The notes under the pieces were generated by a model that worked only from the letters and a program-made list of their open reading frames with translations, ran no database searches and was not told where the DNA came from. This document shows positions 40,713-64,000 of a DNA stretch of 64,000 bases, in pieces. A program made the position numbers and the translations under genes. Within the stretch, counting starts at the first letter, position 1, and each line of letters starts with the position of its first letter. The stretch spans positions 62,001 through 126,000 of the IMG/VR virus record IMGVR_UViG_3300036846_000743. The stretch is one strand, 5' to 3'.

Positions 40713-41141
40713 TCAGCCTGCTTGCTGCTGAGTCAGATATAGTTGATACGCCAGGGCCGCAGCCCGAACGCGGGGATCCTTGGTCAGCTCAGCCGCCGCA
40801 GTCTTGACCAGCTGATCATTAGCCTGAGTCTGTGCGGTCCGGCCGCTGGCCTGCTTGCCCATGAGCAGCCGAAGACTGCCGTGGGCCTGGTCAATGAAGC
40901 CGCCCTGTGCATTGGCCTGCTTCTCCTGGCTCTGCCGCTCGGCCGCGAACAGATCAGCGCCCATCTCCAGAAGTTGCGTGGCCTCAGCCTCATTACGAGG
41001 GACGATACTGTAGTCCTGGGCGAGCTTGGTGAAGAAGACCGGAGCGTGGATCTGGCCGTACAGGAAGTCGTACGCCGTATCCGCCGGCAGGACCTGGACC
41101 TCGTTGCCAGCCGCCCGCTGGCTTTGGTTGTTACCGGCCAC
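40713..41141 (-). CDS. Hypothetical protein (GTG start re-placed to 41141)
   Basis: AGGAGGAGG 7 nt upstream; contains EKQA and VKTAA motifs. Confidence 0.65.
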   Translation of the reverse strand: MAGNNQSQRAAGNEVQVLPADTAYDFLYGQIHAPVFFTKLAQDYSIVPRNEAEATQLLEMGADLFAAERQSQEKQANAQGGFIDQAHGSLRLLMGKQASGRTAQTQANDQLVKTAAAELTKDPRVRAAALAYQLYLTQQQAG

Positions 41142-41202
41142 CGTTTGCCTCCTCCTGGACCACTTGTTTATATGTGTAGGTAGAAACTCAAGACACGAGT
41201 GA

Positions 41203-42144
41203 TCAGGCGAAGTCAGCGCGGGCGAGGCCGCCGGTGTGGCCGATCGTGCCACCCATGGTCTCGTAGGCGAAGAACTCGAGAAGATATGCTTCTCTCTTTA
41301 TATACATCGTCGTGTCTTCCAAAACATACATTTTCCCAATAAACTTCGGATCAGCATACATGAATATGGTATCCGTAGGCACCAGATCATGTTTGATGCT
41401 GATGATCCAACGCTTATCGAGAAAGTCGGTCTCGCTCCAGCCATTTCGCAGCACGTCCTGGCTGAAGTCACCGCCCATCTCATCACGGCCCCACTTCATG
41501 ACCTCCTTGATGGAGATGTTGTTGATCAAGACGGTCGCGGCTTCGAGCCGCGCATCAGTGCTCGGCATGATCTTGAGCGAATCCAGCACCGAGTCGCGCG
41601 TGATGCCGCCATGGATCGTGACCCATTGGGGAATGCCCGACCAGGGCACGTTCAAGTCAGCGCCCATGAGCGCTAAGTTGGTTGCCCCTATGAGTTTGCT
41701 ATCCTCTTCCGCCAGCATGTCCTTGATAGCATTGTCAGAAAGGACCTGCCGGATGTCCATGATCCAGGTGCGGAGTTCGTCGACGTCCTTGGTGAACCGT
41801 GGTGTCACGATGCGATCGAACGCAACGCGATATCGCGGGCCGCGGATGTAGACGTTGGTGGGCAGGGTAGCGAAGGGAATGGAAATGGCAGCCGGCGAAT
41901 CCGGCTCTTTGTCCACAATCTTCACTGGTTTGTCGGTATCAACCTGCCGGTCCAGCTCATCATTGGCGATCTGGAGCGGCGGCATGATGCGTCGTGCGAA
42001 TCCATCTTCACGCATCTTGATGCGAGTGAAGTCGTTGACCGCGTCGATCGCGGTCTTGATCATCCCCGGGTTCGTCAGGTTAGCGAAGAGCGTCTCATTC
42101 ATGAGCTGCACTTCGGACCTGGTCATGATGGCGCCAGCTGCCAC
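41203..42144 (-). CDS. Major capsid protein, HK97/encapsulin-like fold (about 313 aa)
   Basis: REDGFARRIMPP...RYRVAFDRIVTPRFTKDVDELR...DIRQV...DMLAEEDSKLI...LEFFAYETMGGTIGH; GTG 42144 with GGAGGAG; follows protease, scaffold and decoration genes. Confidence 0.82.
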   Translation of the reverse strand: MAAGAIMTRSEVQLMNETLFANLTNPGMIKTAIDAVNDFTRIKMREDGFARRIMPPLQIANDELDRQVDTDKPVKIVDKEPDSPAAISIPFATLPTNVYIRGPRYRVAFDRIVTPRFTKDVDELRTWIMDIRQVLSDNAIKDMLAEEDSKLIGATNLALMGADLNVPWSGIPQWVTIHGGITRDSVLDSLKIMPSTDARLEAATVLINNISIKEVMKWGRDEMGGDFSQDVLRNGWSETDFLDKRWIISIKHDLVPTDTIFMYADPKFIGKMYVLEDTTMYIKREAYLLEFFAYETMGGTIGHTGGLARADFA

Positions 42145-42196
42145 TTTAGTCTCCTCCGTGAATGGGTATCCTGACGAACAAACGACGACGATTGAC

Positions 42197-42814
42197 TCAA
42201 GTGCACTTGGGGACGTAAACCGGCCAGAACGACAAGACCGGCACCCGATGGTGATTGATGTGATCAGCACGACTGACAACGGCACAGATCCCATTGGTCA
42301 AGTTGGTGACCGCAGTGCCCGGAGCCGGAAATGCCGTCCAGAACGCGGTAGCACCCAGCTTGCCAGCGAAGGATCGATCGACGCCGGTACCGACCGGGAA
42401 CATGGCCTCGGTGGGTGCGGTCAGCTGCTGACCAGGGGTGTAGTGGACGGTGGGATTCTGCGTGGGATCGCCCTGGAAGAATTCCGTCGTCTCCAGCTCG
42501 AAGCCGCCGGCGGCGACCAGGCCGGACATCTTGCCCGTGGGCGCGATGGCGGTCCAGTTATTCCCGCCAGGGTTCTGAACATCCAGCTCATGGGACCCCT
42601 GGAGCAGGAAGATCCCCATGTTGCTGGGGCCGAGACCCAGCTCGAACTCACCAGCTGCGTTGACATGGACGACGCTCCCGCCATAGACGGGATCAACCGT
42701 CACGTTGGCCGACAGAAACGCGTCGAAGTCAAGGGCAGCCTCATCGGGCCACCCTTTGAGTTCATCGAGGCAATGCTCGAACATCAGAATTGGACCGGTG
42801 TAAGCGGTAACCAT
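42197..42814 (-). CDS. Capsid decoration/cement-like protein (205 aa)
   Basis: Immediately upstream of the MCP; beta-rich, with GGFELETTEF and YTPGQQLTA. Confidence 0.55.
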   Translation of the reverse strand: MVTAYTGPILMFEHCLDELKGWPDEAALDFDAFLSANVTVDPVYGGSVVHVNAAGEFELGLGPSNMGIFLLQGSHELDVQNPGGNNWTAIAPTGKMSGLVAAGGFELETTEFFQGDPTQNPTVHYTPGQQLTAPTEAMFPVGTGVDRSFAGKLGATAFWTAFPAPGTAVTNLTNGICAVVSRADHINHHRVPVLSFWPVYVPKCT

Positions 42815-42868
42815 AGTTTTCCTCGTTGCCTCCTTGAATGTGCCTCGATGCCGTGGTATCCGTTCCCC

Positions 42869-43282
42869 TTAGTTACCCATGAGTCGCTCGCGAAAGACAC
42901 GAAAACTCTCGGGTTCTTCCCCTTCGCCATGACGACGCCCAGCATAGGGGCCTGCCCCGGCGTTGGCTCGCTTCTCGGTCCCGTTCGTAGCCGGATGGCC
43001 GAGCGTGATCGAGTTGTCTTCTTGCTTGGCCCGCGCTGTCTTGATCAGGATCTGGAGCGTACGCACCGGATCCTTGAGCGCGGTGATCGCGGCCTGCTTC
43101 TCCTCCGGGTCGATGAGTTTGGCTTTGAGCAACTCATCGACGGCCGCGGGGATCAGGTCAGCGGCCTGCTTCTCCATCGTTTCTTGCCGCGAGAGGATCG
43201 AGGCCGCCTTCTCCGCCATTGCAGCGGACATGTCGACGAACTCGAGCACCTTCTCAGGAATGGTCTTGGGTTTTGAGGCCAT
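42869..43282 (-). CDS. Putative scaffolding protein (137 aa)
   Basis: Helical and charged; lies between the protease region and the capsid genes. Confidence 0.5.
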   Translation of the reverse strand: MASKPKTIPEKVLEFVDMSAAMAEKAASILSRQETMEKQAADLIPAAVDELLKAKLIDPEEKQAAITALKDPVRTLQILIKTARAKQEDNSITLGHPATNGTEKRANAGAGPYAGRRHGEGEEPESFRVFRERLMGN

Positions 43283-43323
43283 CGATGATCTTCCTCCGTG
43301 ACTAGACGGGCTCCCTTACATGG

Positions 43324-44676
43324 TCAGCTGCCGATGACCTCGGCGAGATATTGCCGCATCTCGGCCCGGATCTGCTGGTCCTGCGGGCTGCTGGCTACCT
43401 TGTAGCCGAGCTTTCCGGAACGTCGTTTGGTCTTGACCGCCTCGGCAATCTTCAACAGGGTCTCTCGCTGATCGGCAGCGACCTTGGGGGCAGCCGATTG
43501 CAGCTCTTCGGGCGAAACGCCCATTTCATGCATGGCGCCGCTCAAGTTCTCAGTTGGATCACTGCCGCCGCCACCGGGTGGGCCGCCGGGTGGGCCGCCA
43601 GGAGGACCGCCAGGAGGACCGCCAGGAGGACCGCCAGGAGGACCGCCAGGGCCACCGCCGCCACCGAGAAGTCCGCCTTGTTCCACGGCAGCTACCAGCT
43701 GCTGCAAGACTTCCGGCGGTAGCTGTGCCAGGACTTCCATGGGATCTTGCCCACCGGCGCCAGGCGGGCCTGCTGGCATGCCACCGCCGCCCATGTCCCC
43801 AGCTGGGCCGCCACCAGCCGTAGCATCACCACCGCCAGGTGGCATTGCTTCAGCTTCCGTGGCAGCCGGATCGGCGGCTTGCTTGACGGTACGTGCGAAG
43901 CCGTCAAGGTACTCGGCAACCCTGTCGGCCTGAAACTGTGCTTCCTTGATGATGGTCTCGACCATCGCCGAGACCTGAGCGTCAGCGGCACCGTCGTCCA
44001 GCCCCAGCGCGGCGGCCAGTTTGTAGCCGGCGGCTGCGGCCTGCTTGGTCTCCTCGCTGACTTCACTGTCATCGGCCTCCTTCGCCTTTGTCGCGGGCGG
44101 AGTCACCGATTGTGCGTGGCGAACTGGCTTGGTCTCGCCACGACTGTGAACCATAGCGCTGCCGGGGGTGGCTCGCTTCTCGCTGAGCTTGCCTTGCCCC
44201 AGGTCGGCCATCAGCTCGTTGCCGAGCTGGCCAATCGCGACGGCGAGCTTCTTGAAGTGCCACTCGCCGTACTTCTCACCGTCGTCGGCTTTCATGACCG
44301 ACGTCGTACCCGGGTCTTCCTTGGTGCCTTTGAAGTCGTCTTCGGCGGACGGATCCTCGCCGGTCGGGGCGTGCTTGACCCCGATCTGCATCTCGTACTG
44401 CATCTGGTCGCTGGGCCCGCCCTCACCCTCGACCGATGGTGCGCCGATCTCTTCCTTGACGTCCTTGGTGTTCTCGGAATACCGAGCACCGGTCTGCTCG
44501 GCGATGAGACCATCATCGACGTTCTTGGAGGGATGGGTCGTTGCGCCACCGATCGAGCCGGGTTCGCTCAGTGGCTCGCCCGTCTTCACGGCAGCCTGTT
44601 TCTCGTCGTTGATCTCGTCGAAGAACGAGCGAAGGCTGGAAAAGACCGCGTTCTTCGGAGTTTTCAGAGTTGACAT
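43324..44676 (-). CDS. Scaffold-like/internal head protein with PPGG repeats (450 aa)
   Basis: Acidic, low-complexity; several K-x-A motifs; directly after the protease. Confidence 0.55.
   Translation of the reverse strand: MSTLKTPKNAVFSSLRSFFDEINDEKQAAVKTGEPLSEPGSIGGATTHPSKNVDDGLIAEQTGARYSENTKDVKEEIGAPSVEGEGGPSDQMQYEMQIGVKHAPTGEDPSAEDDFKGTKEDPGTTSVMKADDGEKYGEWHFKKLAVAIGQLGNELMADLGQGKLSEKRATPGSAMVHSRGETKPVRHAQSVTPPATKAKEADDSEVSEETKQAAAAGYKLAAALGLDDGAADAQVSAMVETIIKEAQFQADRVAEYLDGFARTVKQAADPAATEAEAMPPGGGDATAGGGPAGDMGGGGMPAGPPGAGGQDPMEVLAQLPPEVLQQLVAAVEQGGLLGGGGGPGGPPGGPPGGPPGGPPGGPPGGPPGGGGSDPTENLSGAMHEMGVSPEELQSAAPKVAADQRETLLKIAEAVKTKRRSGKLGYKVASSPQDQQIRAEMRQYLAEVIGS
43574..43655 (-). repeat. 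12-nt tandem repeat encoding (GGPP)n
   Basis: ccgccaggagga units seen directly. Confidence 0.9.
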
Positions 44677-44807
44677 GGAGGGTCACTCCCTTGACCAGTA
44701 GTGGCCGCCGTGCCGGACGTTAGCTGCTTAGCCTACACGATGACGCCATACGGTGCTAGATGTTGTCAAGATCTCTTGCCCAGTTCAGCCCGCATTCCCG
44801 TTCCCCG

Positions 44808-46307
44808 TCATGCTACATAGTTCTGGCGTATAAGCAAGTTCATGATTGTCGTTTCGGACTGATCTGCGGTCGCAGGGATTGCTGACGCCAGAGCCAGTTT
44901 GTAAAGAGCATACTGCCGGGCAAGCCGCTCGGCACCGCCCATGTCAGCCGCTTGTTTGCGCATTCCCTCGCCATGGCTGCGATGCCGGGGGGAGGGCAAA
45001 CCACGGATCACGTGCAGGGAAACGCGATCCTGAAGATGCTTCGGTTGCAGTCCGGATGACATGGCGAGCTTGGTTGCCCAGCGCTGCATGCTCATCGGCG
45101 GCTCAGCCCCATGGCTATTGATCGCGTAGATGCTGTCCCGGACCTGGACATCCAGAGCCGGACTTCGTGTAAGTCTACCGTAGATGCCCGGCAACTGCGC
45201 TGCCACTTCTTCGTAGGCATCACTGGCTTGCTTCTCGTCCCCGGACACCAGAACCAGAAAGTCACGAAGTGGAAGGGCTACTTTTTCTTGCGATAGTGCT
45301 CCGAGCATGTGTTCGAGCCGGTTGCGGGTATGCAGCTCGCTTGGGAATTCACGGACTGGATCCTGGACCATGAGATCGAAGGCCCTGTCCGTATTGCGCG
45401 GGCCTTCCGCCTCCACCTGCCGCTCAATCTCGGCCAGCCGGTGGGCTACCTTGACGTGCTGGGCAACCCAGCCTGGCATGAATGGATCAACCATCAATTC
45501 CGTTGGCATCGTCAGGCCGATCTCCTCGGCCAGTGCCGCACCACCCAGGCCAATCACGCGACCACCGGCGGCTGCCGCTTTCTCCAGGCGACCCAGGCTC
45601 CAGGCGATCCGGTCGGCTGGCTTGTGAACATGCGAGTCATCGAACCAGACCGGGCTGGGGTTTCTGGCGTGGAGGGTGTGTCCATCGTCGAAGGTACGGC
45701 CGATGTTGTCCTTCAGGCCACCGTACTTGCACATCGTATTGTCGCAGTACTCCTGCCGGGTACGAGCCTTGTTGCCACAACCCGAGCAAATATCGTGGGC
45801 AACCTTGCAGGCCATACTCGTGGGGATGTCATCCCCGCGCTCAAGCAGCTCCAGCTCCTTGTCGGCGACGAGCCCACCATTGGCCTTGGCGGTCTTCTCA
45901 CTACCGTTCAAGCCGGCCAGTAACTCGATCCGCTTCATGGGCTCGTTGAAGGCCGTGTCCAGGAACCGGCCGTAGCTCTTGTCGGGGTCTTTGTTGGCAT
46001 GGTTCCGGTAGAACCGGCCATACTTCTGGAAGGTTCCGTGATGTTGCCGGCATTCACTACGATCGAAGCCGTCGCCATTCCGGTTCGGACCATAGTCTTC
46101 GGTGGCACCCAGTCCGATGATGTGCACCGGGACTTCGTCCTGGGCCAGCTTGATGCGCCGCAGCTTCTCGACGAACTCCACTCCGGCGCGCTTCTCGAGC
46201 ACGGAGCGATCATTGGGCCCCAAGCGACCGTCGCGGCGGAGCCGGACCAGCGCCACGGTCGGTTCGCCGAAGTCATAAGCATGGATACCAGAGCACTTGA
46301 GCATCAT
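44808..46307 (-). CDS. Prohead (capsid maturation) protease-like protein (499 aa)
   Basis: NRNGDGFD...HGTF...YRNHANKDPDKSYG...TSMACKVAHDICSGCGNKA...EYC...DDSHVHKPADRIAWSL resembles herpes/HK97-type phage head proteases; position upstream of scaffold and MCP. Confidence 0.7.
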   Translation of the reverse strand: MMLKCSGIHAYDFGEPTVALVRLRRDGRLGPNDRSVLEKRAGVEFVEKLRRIKLAQDEVPVHIIGLGATEDYGPNRNGDGFDRSECRQHHGTFQKYGRFYRNHANKDPDKSYGRFLDTAFNEPMKRIELLAGLNGSEKTAKANGGLVADKELELLERGDDIPTSMACKVAHDICSGCGNKARTRQEYCDNTMCKYGGLKDNIGRTFDDGHTLHARNPSPVWFDDSHVHKPADRIAWSLGRLEKAAAAGGRVIGLGGAALAEEIGLTMPTELMVDPFMPGWVAQHVKVAHRLAEIERQVEAEGPRNTDRAFDLMVQDPVREFPSELHTRNRLEHMLGALSQEKVALPLRDFLVLVSGDEKQASDAYEEVAAQLPGIYGRLTRSPALDVQVRDSIYAINSHGAEPPMSMQRWATKLAMSSGLQPKHLQDRVSLHVIRGLPSPRHRSHGEGMRKQAADMGGAERLARQYALYKLALASAIPATADQSETTIMNLLIRQNYVA

Positions 46308-46308
46308 A

Positions 46309-47412
46309 TCAGTAGCTGGGTTCGGTGGCCTTCATGTACGCGGGCAAGAGGAAAGGCGAAACGCGCAGGGCCAATCCGCCCCATCGCTTCGTGCGGCTCA
46401 GGGGGTTCGCGGTCATGTCCCGCATGCCGCGAGCGATCGTATCCCTGACGTGCGATCCTTCGATGTAATTCTTGTAGTCCGCCAAGCCGCGCGGCGGCAC
46501 ATTCCCCGGTTGGCCTGTCGGCGTGTTCTTGCGCAACTTGCCGACTATGCGGCCAATCCTGGACTCCTGGAATCCCCTGAATGGATTGGGAGCATCCCAG
46601 GTTCTCCTGGACATCTCATCGTGGAGCAACCTGGTGGCTTCCTCCGGTGTATATCCCGGCGTAGTGCGGGCAGGATCGACGGGTTTCAGATCCGCAGCAC
46701 CCCTGCGGAATGCTTCCGCGAGCCTGGCGTTATGCTGTCTCCGCCAGATCTCGCCGGAGAGGCCGGTAGCTCCCACCATCGCTGTGCCGACCGTCCACGG
46801 TCGATCACTGGCCCCAGTGACCGTGTTGACTCCTTGGCCTACGGCAGAGGCGCCCTCACGGGCTGCCTGTCCGATGTCCTGGCCCCAGCCACCCTTGTCC
46901 TTGGCCGTCTGAGGAACAGCAGCCGCACCAGCCGCACCAGTCGGTGCTATCTTCGTGGGATCAACCGTGATATCCGATCCCGTTGCCCTTGCATAGAGCT
47001 TCTGCGCGCCCGATGCCTCATTCCAGGCTTTATCCGCCGCAGCTTGCTGATCAGCGACTCGCTGCGCCTGTGTAGCCGACGGTCTGGAACTCAGCTGGTT
47101 CCAGGCCCTCCATGCCTCGGGAACGGCACCACCCGCAACACCGCCCAGAACGGCACCGGTCAGCGCCGACGTCAGCGGGTTCTTCTTCCGCTTGGAGAAC
47201 AGGCCAACCCCCAGGCCACCGAATCCGCCAATACCGGCACCAATGGCGGCATGGGTGAGAACTCGTTGCAGGTTAGGATCCAGCGCAGGCATACCCTGGG
47301 CCGTCTTGATGAATCCACCCACGGCGCGGCTGGCGACAGCCGTGCGCGCCAGGAACTGGGCAGCCTCGGCCGGATCCCTACTTAGCCAGTACACTGGTTG
47401 ATGCTGATCCAC
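46309..47412 (-). CDS. Glycine-zipper hydrophobic protein (367 aa), possible ejection protein
   Basis: AAIGAGIGGFGGLGVGLF and ALTGAVLGGVAGGAV segments; start uncertain. Confidence 0.6.
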   Translation of the reverse strand: MDQHQPVYWLSRDPAEAAQFLARTAVASRAVGGFIKTAQGMPALDPNLQRVLTHAAIGAGIGGFGGLGVGLFSKRKKNPLTSALTGAVLGGVAGGAVPEAWRAWNQLSSRPSATQAQRVADQQAAADKAWNEASGAQKLYARATGSDITVDPTKIAPTGAAGAAAVPQTAKDKGGWGQDIGQAAREGASAVGQGVNTVTGASDRPWTVGTAMVGATGLSGEIWRRQHNARLAEAFRRGAADLKPVDPARTTPGYTPEEATRLLHDEMSRRTWDAPNPFRGFQESRIGRIVGKLRKNTPTGQPGNVPPRGLADYKNYIEGSHVRDTIARGMRDMTANPLSRTKRWGGLALRVSPFLLPAYMKATEPSY

Positions 47413-53448: not shown

Positions 53449-53522
53449 GATGGTGGCCCCTTGCACGGGTCATCGTCACGACTCGGCGCTGGACCCCAAT
53501 CCGGCGCCGAGTCACGTTCACG

Positions 53523-56365: not shown

Positions 56366-56401
56366 GGCAACGTCACACCCCCGCTTCACCATACGCTTTC
56401 G

Positions 56402-56656
56402 TCAGACTTGCCAGTCGTAGTCCTTGACGCCGTTAGGCTTGATCGTGTCGATCTGGACCCGGTCGAGGCCGAGATTGGCCAGGATGCGGTTGAAGTGCGG
56501 GTCCCTGGCGTGCGCCGCCGTGACATGCGTTCCGTTGGTATCGCCCACCCATTCCACGACCACGGCCAGCGGGGTCCCGTCACCGCTCTTGACGACCACG
56601 CGGGTGGCCGGGATCACCAGCGGATTGCCCAGGCCGTCGAGGATCTCCAGGATCAT
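56402..56656 (-). CDS. Hypothetical protein (84 aa)
   Basis: ATGA-coupled to the upstream gene. Confidence 0.65.
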   Translation of the reverse strand: MILEILDGLGNPLVIPATRVVVKSGDGTPLAVVVEWVGDTNGTHVTAAHARDPHFNRILANLGLDRVQIDTIKPNGVKDYDWQV

Positions 56657-57456
56657 GCATCACCACTTTTGAGCGATCGGGACAGGGCAGCCAGGGCGCC
56701 CGCCTTGCTGCGAACCGTACGTAATTCATCGAGCGTGTACTCATTACCGACATCGAACGACTGGCGGCGATGATCCTCGCCGAGAATTCTGGAGATCCCT
56801 TGAACACCCGAACCCGCTCTGACCGAGGCCGCCTTGGCGCCGCCGCCAATGGGGCCCTGGTCGGGAGTCAGCGGCGGAATTGGGCCAGGACCAGCCCCGC
56901 CACCCGGAGGCGCACCGCCGCCCGGAGGCGCGCCGCCGCCCGGAGGCATACCGCCTGGTCCCGGCATGGTGGTACCACCACCGCCAGGTGCTGCCTGCTC
57001 CGCCTGTGCCTGTTGCTGCATCATCGGATCAGGCGGCGGACCGACCACGATCGATGGCGGCACCTGGACGTTCAGGGCCTCGCAGACCTTCACGAGCAGG
57101 AACTGGATCGTCCAGAGCTTGGTGTCCAGTAATTGCTGCTCGGCCTTCTTGCCGCCACCCTTGCCAGCAGGCCCGCCGGCCATGCCGCCGGCGCCTTGAG
57201 CTGCCTGGGTGATCTGGGCCAGCGTCGCCGGATCGAGCGGTCCTGGAGGCGGAGCTGGTGCTCCACCCATAGCACCGCCCCCGCCGGCCATCGCGGCTGG
57301 ATCCGGCATGGGCGGCGGAGCGCCGCCAGCCATTGCGCCCGGATCAGGGGGCTGCGCGACCTTCTCGAACTCGTTGTTGTCCAGTACGTCGTTGTCGACC
57401 CGCCATCGTGCTACTGCCCGCAGGTGTGGATTGATGAGCGGAAGTGTCGCTGACAT
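56653..57456 (-). CDS. Pro/Gly/Ala-rich hypothetical protein (267 aa)
   Basis: Low-complexity PPGGG repeats; EKVAQ and AKAAS motifs. Confidence 0.65.
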   Translation of the reverse strand: MSATLPLINPHLRAVARWRVDNDVLDNNEFEKVAQPPDPGAMAGGAPPPMPDPAAMAGGGGAMGGAPAPPPGPLDPATLAQITQAAQGAGGMAGGPAGKGGGKKAEQQLLDTKLWTIQFLLVKVCEALNVQVPPSIVVGPPPDPMMQQQAQAEQAAPGGGGTTMPGPGGMPPGGGAPPGGGAPPGGGAGPGPIPPLTPDQGPIGGGAKAASVRAGSGVQGISRILGEDHRRQSFDVGNEYTLDELRTVRSKAGALAALSRSLKSGDA

Positions 57457-57648
57457 GGTTCACCGTCCCTGATGAGTGGGTTCCCGGTCCCTGAGTCGAC
57501 AGCCGGCTTCACGCCGTCATCTTAACGCGAGTCAGCCTTCCCGAGCAACGCAGCGGCTAAAGTTCGCCGCTGTTCCCGTCATATACCAATGCAAGACGCC
57601 TGGTTGTCAGGCATCCCGATCTGTCCATCACGATGAAAGGGTTTTCTG

Positions 57649-57747
57649 ATGGGAACTGTTCTGTTCTGGCTCTTCGTGCTCTTTTGTCTTGCAGCCGCAG
57701 GACGTAGCGCTTGCAGCTGTACCAATCACTATCACTACCGGAGGTGA
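57649..57747 (+). CDS. Possible 32-aa hydrophobic peptide MGTVLFWLFVLFCLAAAGRSACSCTNHYHYRR (antisense to the operon)
   Basis: GAAAGG upstream; one TM/signal-like segment; followed by hairpins and a U-tract on the + strand. Confidence 0.4.
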   Translation: MGTVLFWLFVLFCLAAAGRSACSCTNHYHYRR

Positions 57748-57756
57748 TCGACCCGC

Positions 57757-57821
57757 CGGAAAGCTAACCCACCCTAGCTTTCCGATGGGTCGGAAGACCC
57801 GTCGGACTGTCTTTTCTTTTT
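57757..57821 (+). terminator. Two adjacent hairpins followed by a T-rich tract (intrinsic terminator-like on +)
   Basis: CGGAAAGCTA-8nt-TAGCTTTCCG (57757-57784) overlaps TCCGATGGGTC-GGAA-GACCCGTCGGA (57781-57806); then CTGTCTTTTCTTTTT. Confidence 0.6.
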
Positions 57822-57826
57822 AGCTA

Positions 57827-59815
57827 TCAGCGATCCATAACGATCTCGACGGGCTGATCTGCGCTAATATCACCCCGCCGGTAAGCCGCCAGGGCATCGG
57901 CCTTGGTAGCGAAAGTCCGCGGTCGCTTACCGGACCGTCCGGCCGTGGCCGCGTAGAGCCCGGCGGCGTATTCGCGGCTCGGAAGTTGATGCGCTTTGAA
58001 AGATGCTGCCGCAAGCAGGTTCCGGCTGGGAAGCATCTTCTCATAAGCGTCCCTGACCGCTTCCTTGGTAACCGGGACGTGGTACTGCATGGCGTCGCCA
58101 TCGAAGTCAGCGCCGAAGCCGGTGACGATCATGGGCGACACGTGCAGGGTCTCGCCCTGCTCGAGCCTCGGGCGGAAAGCCATGATCCCGTACCGGTGCA
58201 GGACTGGTGCTCTGTTGATGATCACCGGCCGGGAGTCCATCTCGTGCATCATCTCGGCGCGCGCCGACGGCTTACGCTCCTTGACCGCCCTGACGGCATC
58301 GATACGAGCCATGCCGCGCTGAACTAACCGGCGAACGATAAAAGGCTGGTAGACATCCCAGGCCCGGTTCTCCGGCAGGCCGACCTGATCCATGTCCAGA
58401 TCGGGATTGGGCACTATAGTCGCTCGACCCACCAGGTCCGTGGCGCTGGAGAGCAGCTTGCGCTGGACCATGCCCGTCTTGGGGCTATTCCCGAAAACCT
58501 GCTTGAGCACGCCCCGGACCCCTCGCTCCTGGTTCTTGGGATGAAGCGGATCACCGAGGCCAGTCACAGCCTTCAGGGTCTGGTAAGCAGCCAGCCGCTC
58601 CTCCGAGACGTCGTTGACCTTGGTCTTCATGTCCCGGAGGTTATCACGAGCATCGATCAGTTCTTTGTAAAGATAATTGGCATCAGCCACCATGGGCAGC
58701 TTGGAGCCAGCCATCGTCGAGACCGGCCGGAACATAGGGGGCAGCACAGGGGCTTTATCGAGCATCCAGTCCCTGGGATGCAGCCCGGCTTTCTGGGCAC
58801 CCTTCAGGTAGCCCAGCTTGCGCACGGCCGTATCACGGGCACCCTTACGTCCTGAGCGAATATCAGCTCGGGCCTGGTTGATGGCCTGATCGAGCTTGAT
58901 CCCATCCAGCGCCTTCGAGATCGCTTCGGAGCCCGTCCGGCCATTGAGTTCCTCCTTGCCGGACAGCACGGACAGGAACTTCTTCTCGGTCATGCCCAGC
59001 ATCCGCCGGATCGGTTCTTCCATCGCTGGGTTGGGTAAGGGCTCGGCCAGCTTAATATGCGCCCACCTGTTTCCCCCGTGACCACCGGTCAAGGCTTCGT
59101 CGAACAAGCCTCCTTTCAGGGGCTTCAGGCCCTCTTTCCAGTCGACCGTGTCGCCGTGGGTGATCTCGCGGTCGCCAGATAATTCATCGACATCTTTCCC
59201 TGAAAGAGCCATCGCATTCAGCCTGGTACCTTGGCGGACGACGTTAATTCCGCCGGCCTTGAGCATGTTGATGAACTTGTCATAGACCATGGGCGTCTTG
59301 GGCGTCGGCAGCGGCCGGCCGGACATGAACTGCGCCCAGAATTCGGGATGCTGCTGGCCCCGAACGGCACCAGCATCACGAAGCACTTCGGTAGCTCCAT
59401 GCGAGAGCAGCGCGTTCACGTCCATGAGTGATATTCTCTTGGAGCCGGCTTCGCCGCCACGTGCTGGGGCCCCCTCGGCCGTGTAGCCGCCGGTGCCGCG
59501 GCCCTGGCCCTTGGATTCGCTGGTGTGGTGAAGTTTCATGAACCAGCGGTTGCCCGTAAGTATGCGCGGGATATCGCGCCCGGCGACCGGATCCTTGATC
59601 GTCTCGGCCGATGTCATGCCATGCCGGGCCAGCTCCTGGATGGCCCATTCGTTGTAGTCCCGGCCGTCGAAGTCAGGAACACGATAGGGCCTGCCGGTCT
59701 TCTCGGCAATCTTGCCCAGAGCGGCCTCGATGCTCTGGGCCGGGTTCGTGCGGGTGATCACACCTAAAGGATTCAACAATACTTCATACGGCCGACCTTT
59801 CATATCTTGTGGCAT
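57827..59815 (-). CDS. rpoC: Fused RNA polymerase beta C-terminus + beta' N-terminal (catalytic) part; conserved coding extends upstream to 59857 without a start codon
   Basis: beta: MPQD...VLLNPLGVITRTNPAQ, MKLHH...KGQGR, KRISLMDVNALLSHGA. beta': GGLFD, VLPPMFRP, DLVGRATIVPNPDLDMDQVGLP, NRAPVLHR, GADFDGD at 58094-58114. Confidence 0.93.
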   Translation of the reverse strand: MPQDMKGRPYEVLLNPLGVITRTNPAQSIEAALGKIAEKTGRPYRVPDFDGRDYNEWAIQELARHGMTSAETIKDPVAGRDIPRILTGNRWFMKLHHTSESKGQGRGTGGYTAEGAPARGGEAGSKRISLMDVNALLSHGATEVLRDAGAVRGQQHPEFWAQFMSGRPLPTPKTPMVYDKFINMLKAGGINVVRQGTRLNAMALSGKDVDELSGDREITHGDTVDWKEGLKPLKGGLFDEALTGGHGGNRWAHIKLAEPLPNPAMEEPIRRMLGMTEKKFLSVLSGKEELNGRTGSEAISKALDGIKLDQAINQARADIRSGRKGARDTAVRKLGYLKGAQKAGLHPRDWMLDKAPVLPPMFRPVSTMAGSKLPMVADANYLYKELIDARDNLRDMKTKVNDVSEERLAAYQTLKAVTGLGDPLHPKNQERGVRGVLKQVFGNSPKTGMVQRKLLSSATDLVGRATIVPNPDLDMDQVGLPENRAWDVYQPFIVRRLVQRGMARIDAVRAVKERKPSARAEMMHEMDSRPVIINRAPVLHRYGIMAFRPRLEQGETLHVSPMIVTGFGADFDGDAMQYHVPVTKEAVRDAYEKMLPSRNLLAAASFKAHQLPSREYAAGLYAATAGRSGKRPRTFATKADALAAYRRGDISADQPVEIVMDR

Positions 59816-59858
59816 CTCATGATCAGGAATGATTGCGGAAACTACGCCTTTATCGCCT

Positions 59859-62800
59859 TCAACCGTACCGGCCGCTGTTCAGCGACCAGTACGTTTTGTC
59901 CTCTCTTTTGCAGTAGACGATATGGTTGGGGACTGTGACGCAGTAAACGTCACCCGAATAGTCGACCATCCTTTCTTCGTTCGCCTCGTAGATCCCGATC
60001 CGGCCATGTTTGAACCAAGGACGCAAATGCTTCCGATTGACACGACCCCGCCAATGCGGCTGTTTCTGCCAGTTATCCGTCCGCTCCGTCCGTTTGAGCG
60101 TCACGGCCCAGCCTAGTTTCAAGCAAATGATCTGGATATCGACAGCTAGCTGTTCAGACGAAGAACCGTATTCCCATGCATCGCCTTGATGACCATCGCC
60201 GGCCATGTAAGCGTCAAAGAAAATGCGGAGCTGCCGCGGGCACAACTCCTGAACGTAGTCTGGAATGTACTTGGTATAGCTATCGCCTAACAGCGCCAGA
60301 ACCCCGTAGAGCCATTTGCTGGTAATCTCGAACCGCTGATCGTCGCTATTGTAGGTGAAACGAATCCCTAGCCGAACTAGGCTATCGTAGATCGCTTGCC
60401 AGTGCGGTGAGTTACGGAACTGGGCAATCTTCACCTTGAAGCTACCATTGGCCTTATTGTAGTCGCACCAACCTTCAGCCAAGTAATAGCCCAGAAACTC
60501 GAGCCAGTCGTCCATTCGGACCTGCTCATAATACTGCTCGCGCGATGTGTATTGCGCGTATGGCTCGAACTTGATCCATTCTTGCTCGATGCCAATCCAG
60601 CGGCAGTCTTTCTTGAAATTCCATTCGCCTTTCGACTCGTAAAATGCCTGTGCCGTGATCGGCTGATAGGACTTGCCTGGCCGTGCTACCCAGAGTCGGT
60701 GCTCGGGCGTGACCAGCATGTTGATGTGCTTGGTGTTCAGGTAGTACATCAATCCATCATGACGATACCGATGCAGATGAGTCGGCTGCTGATATTCCAG
60801 CGCATCCGTCTCAGGGTTGAGAGTTGTCAGCTCGTCATCGGTCACAACCTCCGCAACCGGTTTCCAACCCCGACGGGTCAGAAGCCAGGTCGCCGGGTCG
60901 TAGCACATCTTGTCGCCGACTTCCATGGGGTTCAGGCTCTTGACCGAGACCACGATACCCTTGGGCGTCTTCTCGACGTCGGTAACTTCGCCAGGTGCAT
61001 GATGGTTCCAGGTCTCAGAGTGATCGGCCCACGCCGCTTGCCGGCCCCGGGAGAGCGACCCGTGGGTCCGCTCGCGTTCCTTGACGGCCAGGATCAGCGG
61101 ATCGCCGTGATTGACGATCGTGCCCGGCCTGACCACGCCCTCGTCGTCAATGGTATCAAGCATCTTGCGGTCGAATACACCTGGAAAAGTCGCGATGTGG
61201 GCGCTCTTGCCCGGCTTGACCTCGCCGTCGTGCTCGAGCGAGTGCTGATACATGTGCTCCGAGGAGAACCGCTTGGCCATCGCCTCGCTGATGACGATCG
61301 CGTCCTCGAAGTTCAGGCCGCGGAAGGGGATGTAGGCCGTGCGGGCGTTCTGACCCAGGGCCGATACACCGTGTTCGTCGGTGTAGTTGGACCTGGCCAG
61401 CAGGCTGCCGGCAGCGATCCGGTCGCCAGGCTTGACTACCGGAGTCTGGTGAATATAGGTTTTCCGGTTGTAAGGATAGTTCACGTAAAGCTCGTGCTCG
61501 CGGGGCTTGCCGTCGTCGCCCTGGACGGTGATCTTGCCGTCCTCCACCCTGGTGACGATACCGGGAGCGTCACTGTGCATGGCGCCGAAATGCCGGCCAT
61601 AGCGGGACTCGTAACTGTCACCCTGGCTCCCCCTGACGCCGGCCTGCACCAGCGGGGCCTGGGGATCCTTCACCGGCAGGGCCTGGGTGATCATGCGGCC
61701 GGCCATGACCTCACGCTGCCCCTTGACGGTCGACTTCATCGGCACCAGGTTCGAGATCGAGCTGAAGGCATCGTCCATGTTGGGCAGCTCGTACTGGACC
61801 TGGTTCCGCGGCACGTCGCGGGTCTTGCCGCCGGCCAGCGCCGAGACGTAGGGCTTGACCGTCTGTAGCTCGCCCGGAAAGGCAATCACCGAGTCGGTCA
61901 GGTCCTGCGCGCTGCGGTGTTCGAGCCGGCCAGTACGCACGTTGCGAAACGGCGCGTAGAGCCGGCCGTCGGCCCCCTTGAATGTCCCCTGGGCCACACG
62001 GCCGTCGACACCGGCATGAAAGCTCTCCGGGGTGACCAGGGGATCGATCAGGCCGAAGTGCGACGGCTGAACGTTGCGAGCTTCGGCGGGGATTGCATCA
62101 AGCGAAGGAATCCCTCCAGTGCCCAGCCGGCTGACCCGGGCCTGCTGGTCGAAGATCATGGCCGGGTTAATTCCCTCGGTGGGCTGGCCCAGGCCGCTGG
62201 ACTGGATAGCGGCGTTGATATTCCGGGTCAGTAACTCGGCCGGGATGTGCTTGAGGCTCCCGGTCATGGACGCTTTCCAGAGGACCTTGCCCAGAAGCAT
62301 GCGGTCCTTGCCGACCCGCTCGGATAACAGATCTTCGGGACCCATGGCGTACATGTAGGCCAGGTGATCACGGTCATCGGGTTCTGCTTCTTGTTTGTTT
62401 ATCGCAGCCAGTTTCCTGGTGGTATCCAGCATCTGATCCAGCGAGACCTTGTCGTACGGCTTACCGAGGGTCCGCCTGGTGACCTCTGGGTCGAGCTTCA
62501 TGGCCTCGAACGCTTCGCGGACTTCCTGCTCCTGGGTCTTGGTCGGATCAGGTTTGCGAACCAACCGGCTATGCAGCTTACCGATGACCGATGGATCATC
62601 CTTGAGCATGTTGGGCTGGTAGAGATCACCCCAGGCTTCGCGAAGCTGCTTGTCGCTGGCCCCCATGGCATGGAGCAAGGACGTCAAGGGCATCTTGGAC
62701 TGACCGACTTTGAGGCGGAACACGCCGGTCTCGGGCTCCATGAAGATCCGGTGCGCGGCACCCTGGCCGGGCATGACGTTCACATGGGCTTCGAGTTCGC

Positions 62801-63329
62801 CGTTGGCCTGGCGGCGAGTAAAGACGCCGGGCCGGAGCCTGAGCTGGTGAGCCAGCGTATATTCGGACCCATTCTGGATAAAAGTCCCGTGATCGGTCAG
62901 GTACGGGATCGTAGCCACGGTGGATCGTTTCTGATCGATGACCGCGCCGGTCGCGTTATCACGCAGCGTCCAGGTGCCCCGGAGCCGGGCCCCCAGACTG
63001 CGGCCTCCCAGGATGGCCTTCTTCCAGTCGGCCTTGCCGTACCGCTGCGCGCCTTCATAGCCGACGTCGTCAAGGGTCAGGGTGTGTCGCTGGTTCGAGA
63101 CCGGCGGGATCTTGCCAGCTGCCTCCTTGACGCGATCGAAGATCCGGCTCCGGATCGCGGCCGCATCGCCAAAGGCACGAAGGCCGGCCGGAGCGTGTGC
63201 CGGCAAGGCGGGTGATCGCTCAACACCCTGTTCCTTGTGCGTGCCGTCGTTGATCCTGCCGTCGCCGTCACCGTCTCGCGGGACGCTGGACAGCGATCCC
63301 AGGGCCGACTCTGCCAGAACGCTAGGCAC
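59859..63329 (-). CDS. rpoB: RNA polymerase beta subunit, N-terminal/major part, intein-containing
   Basis: GTFIQNGSEY...LRPGVF, SRLGTGG...ARNVQPSHFGLIDPLVTPE, MAGRMITQA, LGQNARTAYIPFRGLNFEDAIVISE, VGDKM. GTG 63329 with AAGGAGG. Confidence 0.93.
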   Translation of the reverse strand: MPSVLAESALGSLSSVPRDGDGDGRINDGTHKEQGVERSPALPAHAPAGLRAFGDAAAIRSRIFDRVKEAAGKIPPVSNQRHTLTLDDVGYEGAQRYGKADWKKAILGGRSLGARLRGTWTLRDNATGAVIDQKRSTVATIPYLTDHGTFIQNGSEYTLAHQLRLRPGVFTRRQANGELEAHVNVMPGQGAAHRIFMEPETGVFRLKVGQSKMPLTSLLHAMGASDKQLREAWGDLYQPNMLKDDPSVIGKLHSRLVRKPDPTKTQEQEVREAFEAMKLDPEVTRRTLGKPYDKVSLDQMLDTTRKLAAINKQEAEPDDRDHLAYMYAMGPEDLLSERVGKDRMLLGKVLWKASMTGSLKHIPAELLTRNINAAIQSSGLGQPTEGINPAMIFDQQARVSRLGTGGIPSLDAIPAEARNVQPSHFGLIDPLVTPESFHAGVDGRVAQGTFKGADGRLYAPFRNVRTGRLEHRSAQDLTDSVIAFPGELQTVKPYVSALAGGKTRDVPRNQVQYELPNMDDAFSSISNLVPMKSTVKGQREVMAGRMITQALPVKDPQAPLVQAGVRGSQGDSYESRYGRHFGAMHSDAPGIVTRVEDGKITVQGDDGKPREHELYVNYPYNRKTYIHQTPVVKPGDRIAAGSLLARSNYTDEHGVSALGQNARTAYIPFRGLNFEDAIVISEAMAKRFSSEHMYQHSLEHDGEVKPGKSAHIATFPGVFDRKMLDTIDDEGVVRPGTIVNHGDPLILAVKERERTHGSLSRGRQAAWADHSETWNHHAPGEVTDVEKTPKGIVVSVKSLNPMEVGDKMCYDPATWLLTRRGWKPVAEVVTDDELTTLNPETDALEYQQPTHLHRYRHDGLMYYLNTKHINMLVTPEHRLWVARPGKSYQPITAQAFYESKGEWNFKKDCRWIGIEQEWIKFEPYAQYTSREQYYEQVRMDDWLEFLGYYLAEGWCDYNKANGSFKVKIAQFRNSPHWQAIYDSLVRLGIRFTYNSDDQRFEITSKWLYGVLALLGDSYTKYIPDYVQELCPRQLRIFFDAYMAGDGHQGDAWEYGSSSEQLAVDIQIICLKLGWAVTLKRTERTDNWQKQPHWRGRVNRKHLRPWFKHGRIGIYEANEERMVDYSGDVYCVTVPNHIVYCKREDKTYWSLNSGRYG
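59877..60905 (-). mobile_element. Intein with LAGLIDADG homing endonuclease (343 aa) at GDKM|S of beta
   Basis: Block A CYDPATWLLTRRGW; block B LVTPEHRLWV; LAGLIDADG FLGYYLAEG and FFDAYMAGDG; block F/G VYCVTVPNH...WSLN followed by +1 Ser; lower GC. Confidence 0.95.
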
Positions 63330-63339
63330 AGGGCCCTCC

Positions 63340-64000
63340 TTACTTGGGGTGCGGCTGTACCAGTTGCTGTCCAGCGACGCGGCCCAGCGATCCAGCCAGG
63401 CTGGGTAATTGCGGCGGGGACGGCTCTGCCGGCTTCTCGGGCTTCGCCGGCTTGCCATCGGTCGGCGTCATGAGCCGGTTCCAGACGGCCATCTGATTGG
63501 CCTTGATCCGGTTCAGGAATTGGTCGGCCGCCTGGCCGACACTGGCGTGCTTCTCTTTCTTCGCCGGCTCCTCGTCTGGTTCCTTCCTGGCCCCGAACGC
63601 ACGGTGCCAGATCGACGGCTTCGGCCGCATGATCGGTGTCGGCATCGGGATCGCCATGATCGGGCTCGGGGCCTGCTCGGCAATCTGGGCCTGCCGCCGC
63701 TTCACTGCCTCCTCGACGGCCTTGTCCTCGGCCGTTGATCTGGCCCAGTGATAACCACCCAGGCCGGCACCCAGCATGAGGCCGCCGCCCAGCGTCAGGG
63801 CACCACCCATAAGCGGACCGTACCAGCCTTCTGCCTGCTTCTCGTAGAGACTGGCCAGCACATCGAGCGAGCTGGGCTTCGGATCTGCCGAAGCCAGCTT
63901 GCGCCGGCCGGCCAGCGCACTCTCGTAGCCCTTGCGCGCCTCTTCCAGCTCACTCTCCTGCTCGGCCGTCCGGGTCTTGTCGAGCAGATAGTCAGTCAGC
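63340..64000 (-). CDS. Glycine-zipper hypothetical protein, 5'-truncated by window edge
   Basis: The track ORF 63340..63861 stays open upstream to base 64000 (LTDYLLDKTRTAEQ...); MGGALTLGGGLMLGAGLGGY; EKQAE and EKHAS motifs. Confidence 0.7.
   Translation of the reverse strand, partial: LTDYLLDKTRTAEQESELEEARKGYESALAGRRKLASADPKPSSLDVLASLYEKQAEGWYGPLMGGALTLGGGLMLGAGLGGYHWARSTAEDKAVEEAVKRRQAQIAEQAPSPIMAIPMPTPIMRPKPSIWHRAFGARKEPDEEPAKKEKHASVGQAADQFLNRIKANQMAVWNRLMTPTDGKPAKPEKPAEPSPPQLPSLAGSLGRVAGQQLVQPHPK

Follow-up and report, generated by a model that had tools for sequence, protein, structure and literature searches.

A recurrent Lys-x-Ala word in the head-assembly proteins of a 226-kb phage and its distant relatives as the likely recognition motif of a predicted prohead protease

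The window analysed here is a stretch of 64,000 nucleotides (positions 62,001 to 126,000 of IMG/VR record IMGVR_UViG_3300036846_000743) from a 226-kb phage genome with 61% GC. Its part from 40713 to 64000 holds the head-assembly genes on the minus strand in the order 47378-48772, 46309-47412, a predicted prohead protease (44808-46307), 43324-44676, 42869-43282, 42197-42814 and the major capsid gene, the same order as in Salmonella phage Arash and Vibrio phage D181. The protease gene thus lies in the head module, next to a scaffold-like gene and upstream of the major capsid gene. The major capsid protein (41203-42144, minus strand) was assigned by its match to phrog_2522 (major head protein) and by similarity to the Arash major capsid protein and phage G gp27; its likely true start is a GTG at 42144 preceded by GGAGGAG, and the longer ORF to 42294 overlaps the upstream gene. 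Just upstream of the head-assembly genes, Pfam hits mark RNA polymerase beta/beta' genes (59859-63329, 57827-59815 and 54389-56392, together spanning 54389-63329, minus strand), which are orthologous to Arash gp206 and gp216 and are the only such set in the genome.

The predicted protease comprises 499 aa with an N-terminal leader, a catalytic domain (residues 45-243; 45579-46175, minus strand) and a long helical C-terminal extension. It had no Pfam match at E <= 0.01 and its only PHROG hit, phrog_2774, is of unknown function, so that its assignment rests on the fold and on tblastn matches to annotated prohead proteases (Rhodococcus phage E3 gp77 and Stormageddon gp13), the matches over residues 38-251 including Arash gp222, Vibrio D181 and phage G gp19 in addition to E3 gp77. 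An AF2 model has a pLDDT of 85-97 over residues 45-243, and although Foldseek E-values alone were weak (0.08), the top 36 structural matches obtained with VIA-align are all herpesvirus proteases or T4 gp21 (Z 10.5 to the VZV protease, 10.1 to the pseudorabies protease and 9.9 to T4 gp21), which places the modelled domain in the assemblin/T4 gp21 fold. H103 (in H-x-N-K-D-P) and S164 (in T-S-M-A-C) are invariant in 38 homologues, and their spacing of 61 residues resembles that of H85 and S140 in T4 gp21 (10.64898/2026.03.04.709575), a comparison made without a residue-level superposition. The domain also contains a conserved Cys cluster (C167, C174, C177, C188).

A first-pass annotation of the sequence had remarked that K-x-A words recur at domain boundaries in many otherwise unrelated head-region proteins and are much less evident in the tail genes. 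This observation is borne out: all 16 words it named are present in minus-strand ORFs of 40713-64000, and in the count against shuffled controls that had been set as its test, K-x-A occurs 79 times in this region against 39.4 expected from within-protein shuffles (sd 5.8, z 6.9, reached by none of 5000 shuffles), while the tail region (1-40406) holds 32 against 37.5 expected. However, the excess is not spread over the whole span but is carried by five ORFs near the capsid gene (40713-48772), namely 40713-41252 (4 vs 1.0), 42869-43282 (5 vs 1.9), 43324-44676 (13 vs 3.8), 44808-46307 (12 vs 2.5) and 47378-48772 (9 vs 2.4). The other ORFs from which words had been drawn (46309-47412, 50216-52807, 53523-54047, 56653-57456 and 63340-63861) are not individually significant, and the RNA polymerase ORFs are at expectation (2 vs 2.5, 5 vs 4.4, 6 vs 4.9). 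In the five ORFs K-x-A is the top pair of 1236 spaced residue pairs (43 vs 11.4, z 9.3), whereas K to A at spacings 0, 2 and 3 is near expectation (11, 16 and 17 vs 11.4); this z is inflated, since the five ORFs were chosen after seeing the counts, a bias that affects neither the region-wide test nor the tests in other phages. Over 245 crude ORFs of the whole genome, three of the four most enriched proteins lie in this 5.5-kb block.

Apart from the protease, the carriers are scaffold-like and poorly folding proteins and small neighbours. The gene just after the protease (43324-44676, minus strand) encodes a scaffold-like, mostly unstructured protein of 450 aa with a Gly/Pro-rich tract (Atlas model pLDDT 0.41), in which 13 of 29 lysines belong to a K-x-A; it occupies the same position as Arash gp223 and D181 278, which carry 8 and 10 sites, respectively. 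The small head-assembly protein of 137 aa (42869-43282, minus strand) carries EKAAS, EKQAA twice, IKTAR and EKRAN. The protein of 464 aa encoded two genes upstream of the protease (47378-48772, minus strand) shows weak similarity to Arash gp220 (E 2e-4) and D181 275, which carry 10 and 11 sites, and the protein of up to 179 aa encoded just after the capsid gene (40713-41252, minus strand) has 4 K-x-A among only 6 lysines, including DQLVKTAAAE, the third-highest scoring site genome-wide with a matrix trained on other phages. With this matrix, the sites of the head block score better than K-x-A elsewhere in the genome (mean 1.06 vs -1.21, p 5e-8).

The signal was replicated in syntenic head blocks defined a priori in Arash (44 vs 19.7) and D181 (50 vs 21.0), K-x-A being the top pair in each, and it also recurs in the protease of phage G. 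Among 55 non-redundant metagenomic loci found only through protease homology, K-x-A is the top pair in 34 and among the top three in 46, with pooled counts of 2522 against 1277 expected (z 34.8) across relatives of 29-64% GC. L/M/F two residues before the Lys, Glu just before it and Ser, Glu or Ala just after the Ala are enriched as well, giving a consensus of [L/M/F]-x-K-x-A-[S/A/E]. In these relatives the enrichment follows gene position, with ratios of 2.4-3.1 at the protease, at the three genes after it (2.97 at the first, 3.1 at the second and third) and at the gene two before it (2.63), falling to about 1.1-1.4 from the capsid region onward. In contrast, the protease gene of the more distant Rhodococcus phage E3 shows no clear enrichment (7 vs 4.5). 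As a control of the method, the same scan applied to T4 gp67, gp68, gp21 and gp22 returned I-x-E at rank 1 and L-x-E at rank 3, the known gp21 motif (PMC5694885).

Individual sites are conserved at aligned positions. In the protease, K39-R-A41 (46185-46193, minus strand; context SVLEKRAG) lies at the N-terminal edge of the catalytic domain, and its Lys and Ala are, like H103 and S164, invariant in 38 of 38 homologues at 23% mean identity. At the C-terminal edge, K243-A-A245 (45573-45581, minus strand; context GRLEKAAAAG) is a candidate self-release site, with K-x-A at this alignment position in 30 of 38 homologues (VLEKVAN in Arash, VLQKVAS in D181 and ILEKVAS in phage G). A further site, K451-Q-A453 (44949-44957, minus strand; context EGMRKQAADM), lies in a disordered linker of the C-terminal extension and is the fourth-highest scoring site genome-wide with the matrix trained on other phages. 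The proposed location at domain boundaries thus holds for these three sites of the protease, the one protein where it could be examined, since they lie in or at the edge of the low-confidence linkers 27-41, 244-272 and 431-456 of the model, although several other sites lie inside helices or inside the folded catalytic domain (K138, K168) and may be chance occurrences or inaccessible. In the capsid protein, the site G-M-I-K-T-A-I (42049-42057, minus strand), about 24-30 residues from the start, is a candidate maturation cleavage site: K-x-A is kept at the aligned position in 50 of 51 orthologues while the flanking residues vary, whereas the capsid protein of phage G lacks it. The rest of the capsid protein holds 18 K-x-A against 69.1 expected, the most depleted of 936 pairs. 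However, other residue pairs deviate almost as much in those related capsid sequences, and the portal and RNA polymerase proteins of relatives are not depleted, avoidance being seen only in the capsid protein.

The best explanation, held with fair confidence, is that K-x-A, in full [L/M/F]-[E/V/T/Q]-K-x-A-[S/A/E], is the recognition and cleavage motif of the prohead protease encoded at 44808-46307, with Ser164 and His103 as its putative catalytic residues. In this view, the protease would free its catalytic domain inside the assembled prohead by cutting at K39-x-A41 and K243-x-A245, chop the scaffold-like proteins (43324-44676, 42869-43282, 47378-48772 and 40713-41252) at their many sites so that they can leave or condense, and trim about 25-30 residues from the N-terminus of the capsid protein at G-M-I-K-T-A. 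Self-cleavage beside the catalytic domain is established for SPN3US gp245 and phiKZ gp175 (PMC5694885). Since the specified residues alternate (hydrophobic, x, Lys, x, Ala), they would fit a substrate lying as an extended strand in the protease groove with P5, P3 and P1 facing the enzyme, and the cut is therefore placed after Ala (Lys as P3, Ala as P1, Ser/Ala/Glu as P1'). This placement rests on analogy only, and a cut after Lys, with the hydrophobic residue at P3 as in T4, is not excluded. While the statistics, the conservation, the fold and the positions of the sites come directly out of the analysis, the proteolytic activity, the cutting of the word at all, its cutting by this enzyme and the bond that is cut are inferred. 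In docking, a motif peptide, a 19-residue piece of the 137-aa protein (residues 29-47), scored 0.45 against the protease domain, with 0.13 for the best control, and the three runs agreed in at least 64% of their contacts with a partner pLDDT of at least 48, but the result gave no contacts and was rated as weak support: 51 of 78 solved complexes and 2 of 108 mismatched pairs reach the mark, but a pass at 0.60 or under is more often wrong than right.

The interpretation given in the first-pass annotation is therefore only partly supported. That K-x-A is the word read by the head protease is backed by comparative evidence only, and that it marks a large internal-protein cargo is not supported as written, since nothing shows that the carriers stay in the head or are ejected. 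It had further been proposed that the RNA polymerase may be packaged, as its genes are interleaved with this block, yet the motif gives no support for this, the subunits being neither enriched nor depleted. What speaks for packaging is independent of the motif and weak: the polymerase genes sit between the portal and head-assembly genes in Arash and just upstream of the head-assembly genes here, the genome holds only one beta/beta' set, and virion mass spectrometry of Arash lists its beta subunit as the most detected protein, albeit in a preparation where 116 of 252 proteins were detected (PMC10585845). Support for a packaged polymerase comes down to this mass spectrometry, which is suggestive but unspecific.

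Other readings appear less likely. K-x-A could be a short binding or assembly motif, a repeated contact word through which scaffold proteins, the protease tail and the N-arm of the capsid protein bind each other, the portal or the shell; it sits in all of these partners of prohead assembly, no cleavage product has been observed for this phage or any relative (the Arash study used a trypsin digest and the supplements examined carry no peptide-level data), and Arash mass spectrometry still detects gp220-gp225 in virion preparations. Such a role is unlikely, however, because a binding word explains neither why the capsid protein body avoids it nor why two conserved copies bracket the catalytic domain at disordered edges, which is the pattern of self-processing, and because the every-second-residue pattern fits strand docking in a protease groove and the same scan returns a true cleavage motif in T4.

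It is more doubtful still that the word is cut by another enzyme, either a host protease or a second phage protease. No assay links the enzyme to the word and phage G encodes other proteases such as ClpP (10.1101/2024.12.16.628780), but the signal was recovered in loci selected only for homology to this protease across 29-64% GC, and therefore many hosts, it peaks on and around the protease gene, and the protease carries conserved copies at its own domain edges, while the lack of clear enrichment in E3 would fit a specificity that changes with the protease. A chance or compositional artefact, in which Lys- and Ala-rich helical proteins would give K-x-A by composition or helix periodicity, is very unlikely and largely refuted by the replication in other phages. 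The carriers are rich in Ala and partly helical, and the five ORFs were picked after the counts were seen, yet the shuffles preserve the composition of each protein, only spacing 1 is enriched and not 3 or 4, so that helix composition does not explain the excess, A-x-K is not enriched, and individual sites are conserved at aligned positions at 23% identity. A DNA-level word (AAG NNN GCN) is disfavoured as well, since 24 different codons occupy the x position, Lys and Ala codon use at the sites matches the background, and the same amino-acid word is found in relatives from 29 to 64% GC.

The closest parallels are the prohead proteases T4 gp21, phiKZ gp175 and SPN3US gp245 with their motifs L/I-x-E, S/A/G-x-E and A-x-E. 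T4 gp21 shares the predicted fold, and these systems share the logic of a three-residue word with a free middle position that is repeated in core or scaffold proteins, present in the protease itself and used to trim the capsid protein (PMC5694885). Here, however, the specified residues are Lys and Ala rather than a small or hydrophobic residue plus Glu, and no residue-x-Glu pair is among the enriched pairs, so that this phage would work like that code without belonging to the Glu-specific group; its protease is also much longer, with a helical C-terminal extension and a Cys cluster, and without detectable sequence similarity to gp21. Herpesvirus assemblin, the best structural match, has maturation and release sites of the form (V/L/I)-x-A followed by Ser. 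Ala likewise precedes the putative cut here, Ser is the most enriched residue after it (2.8-fold), and the protease domain is followed by a scaffold-like extension with a site at the junction, like the release site, but the residue two before Ala is Lys and not hydrophobic, a further hydrophobic preference lies two residues earlier, and the position of the cut is inferred. The nearest cultured relatives, Arash, Vibrio phages D181, D148 and D69 and Bacillus phage G, have homologous proteases and capsid proteins (25-36% identity), the same gene order with RNA polymerase genes beside the head genes in Arash and D181, and the same K-x-A excess, but no DNA similarity; the present genome is larger, has a higher GC content and carries a split RNA polymerase beta gene. 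None of the papers examined on these phages mentions the motif, and a Lys-x-Ala specificity was not found described in the literature searched. As in the phiKZ-type virion RNA polymerase, multi-subunit beta/beta'-like genes lie among structural genes and a relative's polymerase is abundant in virion mass spectrometry (PMC10585845), but only one set is present rather than a non-virion set and a virion set that is found in particles and partly processed by the head protease, its subunits are larger and less fragmented, and they show no motif enrichment.

Prohead proteases read short words, but those established for large phages all end in Glu, and a Lys-x-Ala word in a widespread clade would add a second specificity class. 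In a broader and more tentative reading, about as likely wrong as right or slightly more so, a large and mostly uncultivated clade of big phages, covering at least 336 IMG/VR contigs plus Arash, the Vibrio D-phages and phage G, uses a prohead protease of this specificity that cuts after Ala, as in herpesviruses and unlike the T4 and phiKZ enzymes, and carries in the virion the single RNA polymerase encoded beside the head genes. The code would then be strong enough to be read from sequence alone, so that the processed head proteome, the self-release sites of the protease and the mature capsid protein N-terminus could be predicted for hundreds of genomes. As the putative Ala-then-Ser cut echoes herpesvirus assemblin, which shares the fold, the finding bears on how specificity evolved across that virus lineage. 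In practical terms, the word gives a sequence-only way to find scaffold and processed head proteins that are otherwise unannotatable in hundreds of metagenomic phage genomes, predicts exact mature termini for cryo-EM model building and names sites to mutate. Furthermore, a recent preprint reports that bacterial CBASS immunity senses prohead protease activity through loops containing the protease's motif (10.64898/2026.03.04.709575), and the word that a phage protease reads may therefore decide which defence systems can detect it.

The window comprises bases 62001-126000 of a single virus record of 226,073 bp, rated 100% complete by CheckV and with 61% GC, and all real genes of the window lie on the minus strand. 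Read in the direction of transcription, the region 40713-64000 opens with a 376-aa ORF that runs off the window's end and continues with three RNA polymerase genes, namely 59859-63458 (beta), 57827-59815 (end of beta fused to the start of beta') and 54389-56392 (rest of beta'). These are followed by small ORFs and an HNH endonuclease ORF at 52765-53466 (phrog_2255, E 3e-6), by an 863-aa protein and ORFs of 147, 347, 464 and 367 aa, by the 499-aa predicted prohead protease (44808-46307), by ORFs of 450 (43324-44676), 137 (42869-43282) and 205 aa (42197-42814), by the major capsid gene (41203-42294, phrog_2522) and by a 179-aa ORF, after which the tail genes begin. A DNA similarity search of the head block against cultured phages returned no match. 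At the protein level, however, the protease and the capsid protein match Salmonella phage Arash, Vibrio phages D181, D148 and D69 and, more weakly, Bacillus phage G, while the protease also matches Rhodococcus phage E3 and related Rhodococcus and Gordonia phages. A Pfam search with all 20 ORFs of the region hit only the RNA polymerase domains, and PHROGs added only the capsid protein, the HNH endonuclease and the polymerase.

Two gene models in this region need correction. The capsid gene most likely starts at GTG 42144, preceded by GGAGGAG, which removes its overlap with 42197-42814 as well as a spurious TKVAA word, and the polymerase beta gene most likely starts at GTG 63329, preceded by AAGGAGG and directly after the stop of the upstream gene. 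The 205-aa ORF 42197-42814, located between the small K-x-A-rich protein and the capsid gene, contains no K-x-A at all and sits where D181 has gene 281 and where phage G has its capsid decoration gene; it may be a decoration protein. The proteins encoded at 46309-47412 and 63340-64000 (an ORF that continues to window coordinate 64470) have Gly-rich, membrane-like stretches (GAGIGGFGGLGVGL, GGALTLGGGLMLGAGLGG) inside the head module, and very large proteins of the same style lie elsewhere in the genome (genome 157891-162612, 1573 aa).

The first-pass annotation had observed that K-x-A-like words recur in proteins of 40713-64000 and are much less evident in the tail genes, and this observation holds, since all sixteen words it listed are present and the excess is statistically clear. 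Against 5000 shuffles that keep the composition of each protein, 40713-64000 holds 79 K-x-A where 39.4 are expected (z 6.9), whereas the tail half of the window holds 32 against 37.5. The excess is local, being carried by five ORFs around the capsid gene (4 vs 1.0, 5 vs 1.9, 13 vs 3.8, 12 vs 2.5 and 9 vs 2.4), while the polymerase genes are at expectation. In those five ORFs 43 of 91 lysines are followed by x-A, and of 1236 spaced residue pairs tested K-x1-A is first (z 9.3) and E-K second (z 4.5). Since the five ORFs were picked after the counts had been seen, more weight is put on the tests in other phages and on the positions of the sites. Over 245 crude ORFs of the whole genome, three of the four most enriched proteins lie in this block. 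The fourth, outside the window, is a 389-aa protein (genome 32855-34024, plus strand) located 3.4 kb downstream of the large terminase gene (genome 27519-29459). It has 13 of its 20 lysines in K-x-A (13 vs 3.1, second most enriched in the genome), holds the top-scoring site genome-wide (PDFVKQASVE) and has no PHROG hit and no tblastn match among cultured phages. It is a candidate further protease substrate. In contrast, a 332-aa protein outside the window (genome 166711-167709, minus strand) ends in five tandem copies of K-P-A-E-H-H-A, which raise its K-x-A count through a repeat and not through the motif described here.

The signal was also recovered in other phages. In the syntenic blocks of Arash (gp218-gp225) and D181 (genes 273-281), which were defined by gene order and not by motif content, K-x1-A is again the top pair of all (44 vs 19.7 and 50 vs 21.0), and L or M two residues before the Lys and S after the Ala are also enriched. 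The sequences make this plain to the eye, as in MTKQASA, LVKEASV, LEKAAAV, MEKAASV and IEKSASV. Furthermore, 80 IMG/VR loci were retrieved solely by homology to the protease, out of 336 confirmed candidates. In 55 non-redundant loci, K-x1-A is the top pair of about 1200 in 34 and within the top three in 46, with pooled counts of 2522 vs 1277 (z 34.8). The next pairs are L-x1-K and M-x1-K, and E-K, F-x1-K and K-x2-S also rank in the top ten, giving the consensus [L/M/F]-[E/V/Q/T]-K-[Q/T/V]-A-[S/E/A]. Phage G shares the signal in its protease gp19 (8 vs 2.4) and in gp21 (7 vs 2.8), whereas the more distant Rhodococcus E3 gene does not clearly do so (7 vs 4.5). To examine whether such a scan finds cleavage motifs, the same procedure was applied to T4 gp67, gp68, gp21 and gp22, where it ranks I-x1-E first and L-x1-E third of 1160 pairs, with K-x-A at rank 48; I/L-x-E is the established gp21 motif (PMC5694885; 10.64898/2026.03.04.709575).

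Two other explanations of the enrichment were considered and rejected. A helix or composition effect would not be confined to one spacing, yet in the five ORFs K to A at spacings 0, 2 and 3 is near chance, A-x-K and R-x-A are not enriched, and the shuffles preserve the composition of each protein. A word at the DNA level is rejected by the diversity of codons, as the middle position uses 24 different codons in the window and Lys and Ala codon use at the sites matches the background, and by the relatives, whose loci span 29-64% GC. The signal is therefore in the protein, not the DNA.

The 499-aa protein itself has no Pfam match, but its residues 38-251 match proteins annotated as prohead or capsid maturation protease. 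An AlphaFold2 model built on 35 homologues is confident (pLDDT 85-97) over residues 45-243. Foldseek alone gave weak E-values for this model and was dominated by spurious AcrB matches to the helical tail, and it was a second structural aligner that settled the predicted fold, its 36 best matches all being herpesvirus proteases or T4 gp21 (VZV Z 10.5, pseudorabies 10.1, T4 gp21 9.9). H103 and S164 are invariant in 38 homologues at 23% mean identity. Inserted in the catalytic domain is a cluster of four cysteines (C167, C174, C177 and C188; window 45744-45809, protease residues 167-188), of which C174 is invariant and C177 and C188 are at least 90% conserved among homologues. It looks like a zinc-binding knuckle, a feature that is not known from T4 gp21 or the herpesvirus proteases. 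The domain is followed by a disordered linker and a helical extension, as in protease-scaffold fusions.

Three patterns in the location of the sites fit a protease and are hard to explain otherwise. In the 38-sequence alignment of the protease K39 and A41 are invariant, as conserved as the putative catalytic residues, a second K-x-A follows the catalytic domain in 30 of 38 and a third follows in 25 of 38. In the model these sites fall at the edges of the folded domain, in or beside the low-confidence segments 27-41 and 244-272, and K451 lies in segment 431-456; self-cleavage beside the catalytic domain is known for SPN3US gp245 and phiKZ gp175 (PMC5694885). Across relatives the enrichment also follows gene order, with ratios of 2.6 two genes before the protease, 2.35 in the protease and 3.0-3.1 in the three genes after it, falling to 1.1-1.4 from the capsid region onward. 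Lastly, the capsid protein keeps one K-x-A about 24-30 residues from its start in 50 of 51 orthologues while the neighboring residues vary (MIKTAI, LVKEAG, MEKVAA, KEKIAA), and the rest of the protein holds 18 where 69.1 are expected (ratio 0.26), the most depleted of 936 pairs. The latter must be taken with some caution and is counted as moderate evidence, since the capsid sequences are related and a few other pairs deviate almost as much. In sum, the motif is many-fold in proteins that would have to be removed, single and, in 50 of 51 orthologues, retained where a trim is expected, and avoided in the shell protein that must survive.

In addition, the K-x-A sites of the window's head block fit a matrix trained only on other phages far better than K-x-A elsewhere in the genome (p 5e-8). 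Docking of a 19-residue motif peptide against the protease domain scored 0.45, with a best control of 0.13, which amounts to weak support only: the mark was reached by 51 of 78 solved complexes and 2 of 108 mismatched pairs, but a pass at 0.60 or under is more often wrong than right. The three runs agree in at least 64% of their contacts and the partner pLDDT is at least 48, but no contacts were returned, so that the docking could not locate the cut bond.

The constrained positions of the motif alternate (hydrophobic, free, Lys, free, Ala), which is what a strand bound in a protease groove gives, with every second side chain facing the enzyme. For this protease fold, the motifs of T4 (L/I-x-E), phiKZ (S/A/G-x-E) and SPN3US (A-x-E) have the form P3-x-P1 (PMC5694885). 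The herpesvirus consensus, V/L/I-x-A followed by Ser, has the same form. By that rule K would be P3 and A would be P1, the cut would fall after Ala, and the Ser/Ala/Glu preference would be that of P1'. The alternative, hydrophobic-x-K with a cut after Lys, mirrors T4 with reversed charge, but it would make Ala a P2' determinant, which is unusual, and we consider a cut after Ala the more likely of the two, by analogy only. While the enrichment, the conservation, the modelled fold and the placement of the sites are direct results of the sequence and model analyses, proteolytic activity of the enzyme, cleavage at the word and the identity of the cut bond are inferred from them. The supplement of the Arash virion study contains no peptide-level data that could show new termini.

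The interpretation offered by the first-pass annotation, that K-x-A is the site of the head protease and marks a large internal-protein cargo and that, because the polymerase genes are interleaved with this block, the RNA polymerase may be virion-packaged, is only partly supported. The comparative evidence favors the first of these claims, but a large internal cargo is not shown; the carriers look like scaffold and core proteins. The 450-aa protein is predicted to be largely unstructured and has a long Gly/Pro tract, including repeated G-G-P-P, at about residues 280-370 between two K-x-A-rich parts. Mass spectrometry does, however, detect gp220-gp225 in Arash virion preparations.

On the RNA polymerase the motif is silent, with counts at expectation in this phage, Arash and D181, and avoidance of the word is uninformative as a test for packaging because the portal proteins of relatives are not depleted either. 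Both polymerase beta proteins of Arash (gp206) and D181 (gene 263) begin with the motif-like word M-P-K-x-A-S (MPKSAS and MPKKAS; positions 5094-5111 of the Arash sequence L001 and 9072-9089 of the D181 sequence L002), an unexplained feature that at first appeared to align with RVKEAA at residue 111 of the window's protein. The BLAST register, in which residue 146 of the window's protein equals residue 61 in Arash, shows that they do not align, the window's protein having a longer N-terminus with no aligned copy, and the similarity was dropped as evidence. Independent hints of packaging exist, as the polymerase genes lie between the portal and head-assembly genes in Arash and just upstream of the head-assembly genes here. 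Moreover, only one set of beta/beta' domains, the one in the window, is present in the whole genome, whereas phiKZ-like phages carry two sets. In Arash the beta subunit gave the most spectra of any virion protein, although 116 of 252 proteins were detected, so that purity is doubtful (PMC10585845). Packaging is regarded as possible, but it is not supported by the present finding.

The beta-type gene, which is one 1525-aa gene in Arash (gp206), is broken in this phage after about residue 881 (window 59815-60900, comprising the end of ORF 59859-63458 and the start of 57827-59815). The first ORF continues for some 320 residues with a LAGLIDADG-like match (PF14528, E 8e-4, below its cut-off), and the second ORF resumes at the equivalent of gp206 residue 812. 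This suggests invasion by a homing endonuclease (intron or split gene), but an Rfam search for a group I intron at the break found no match. The HNH endonuclease ORF at 52765-53466 lies between the polymerase genes and the head genes, and D181 also carries homing endonucleases inside its polymerase region (L002 6118-6741 and 10898-11515).

Searches for a Lys-x-Ala motif of prohead or capsid maturation proteases, and for cleavage after alanine, found nothing relevant in the literature examined, although this left out most subscription journals and a prior report cannot be excluded, and neither the Arash paper nor the phage G multi-omics preprint discusses processing. On present evidence, the motif follows the familiar logic of a head-protease cleavage code, but with a different and herpesvirus-like word that is shared by a large and mostly uncultivated clade.
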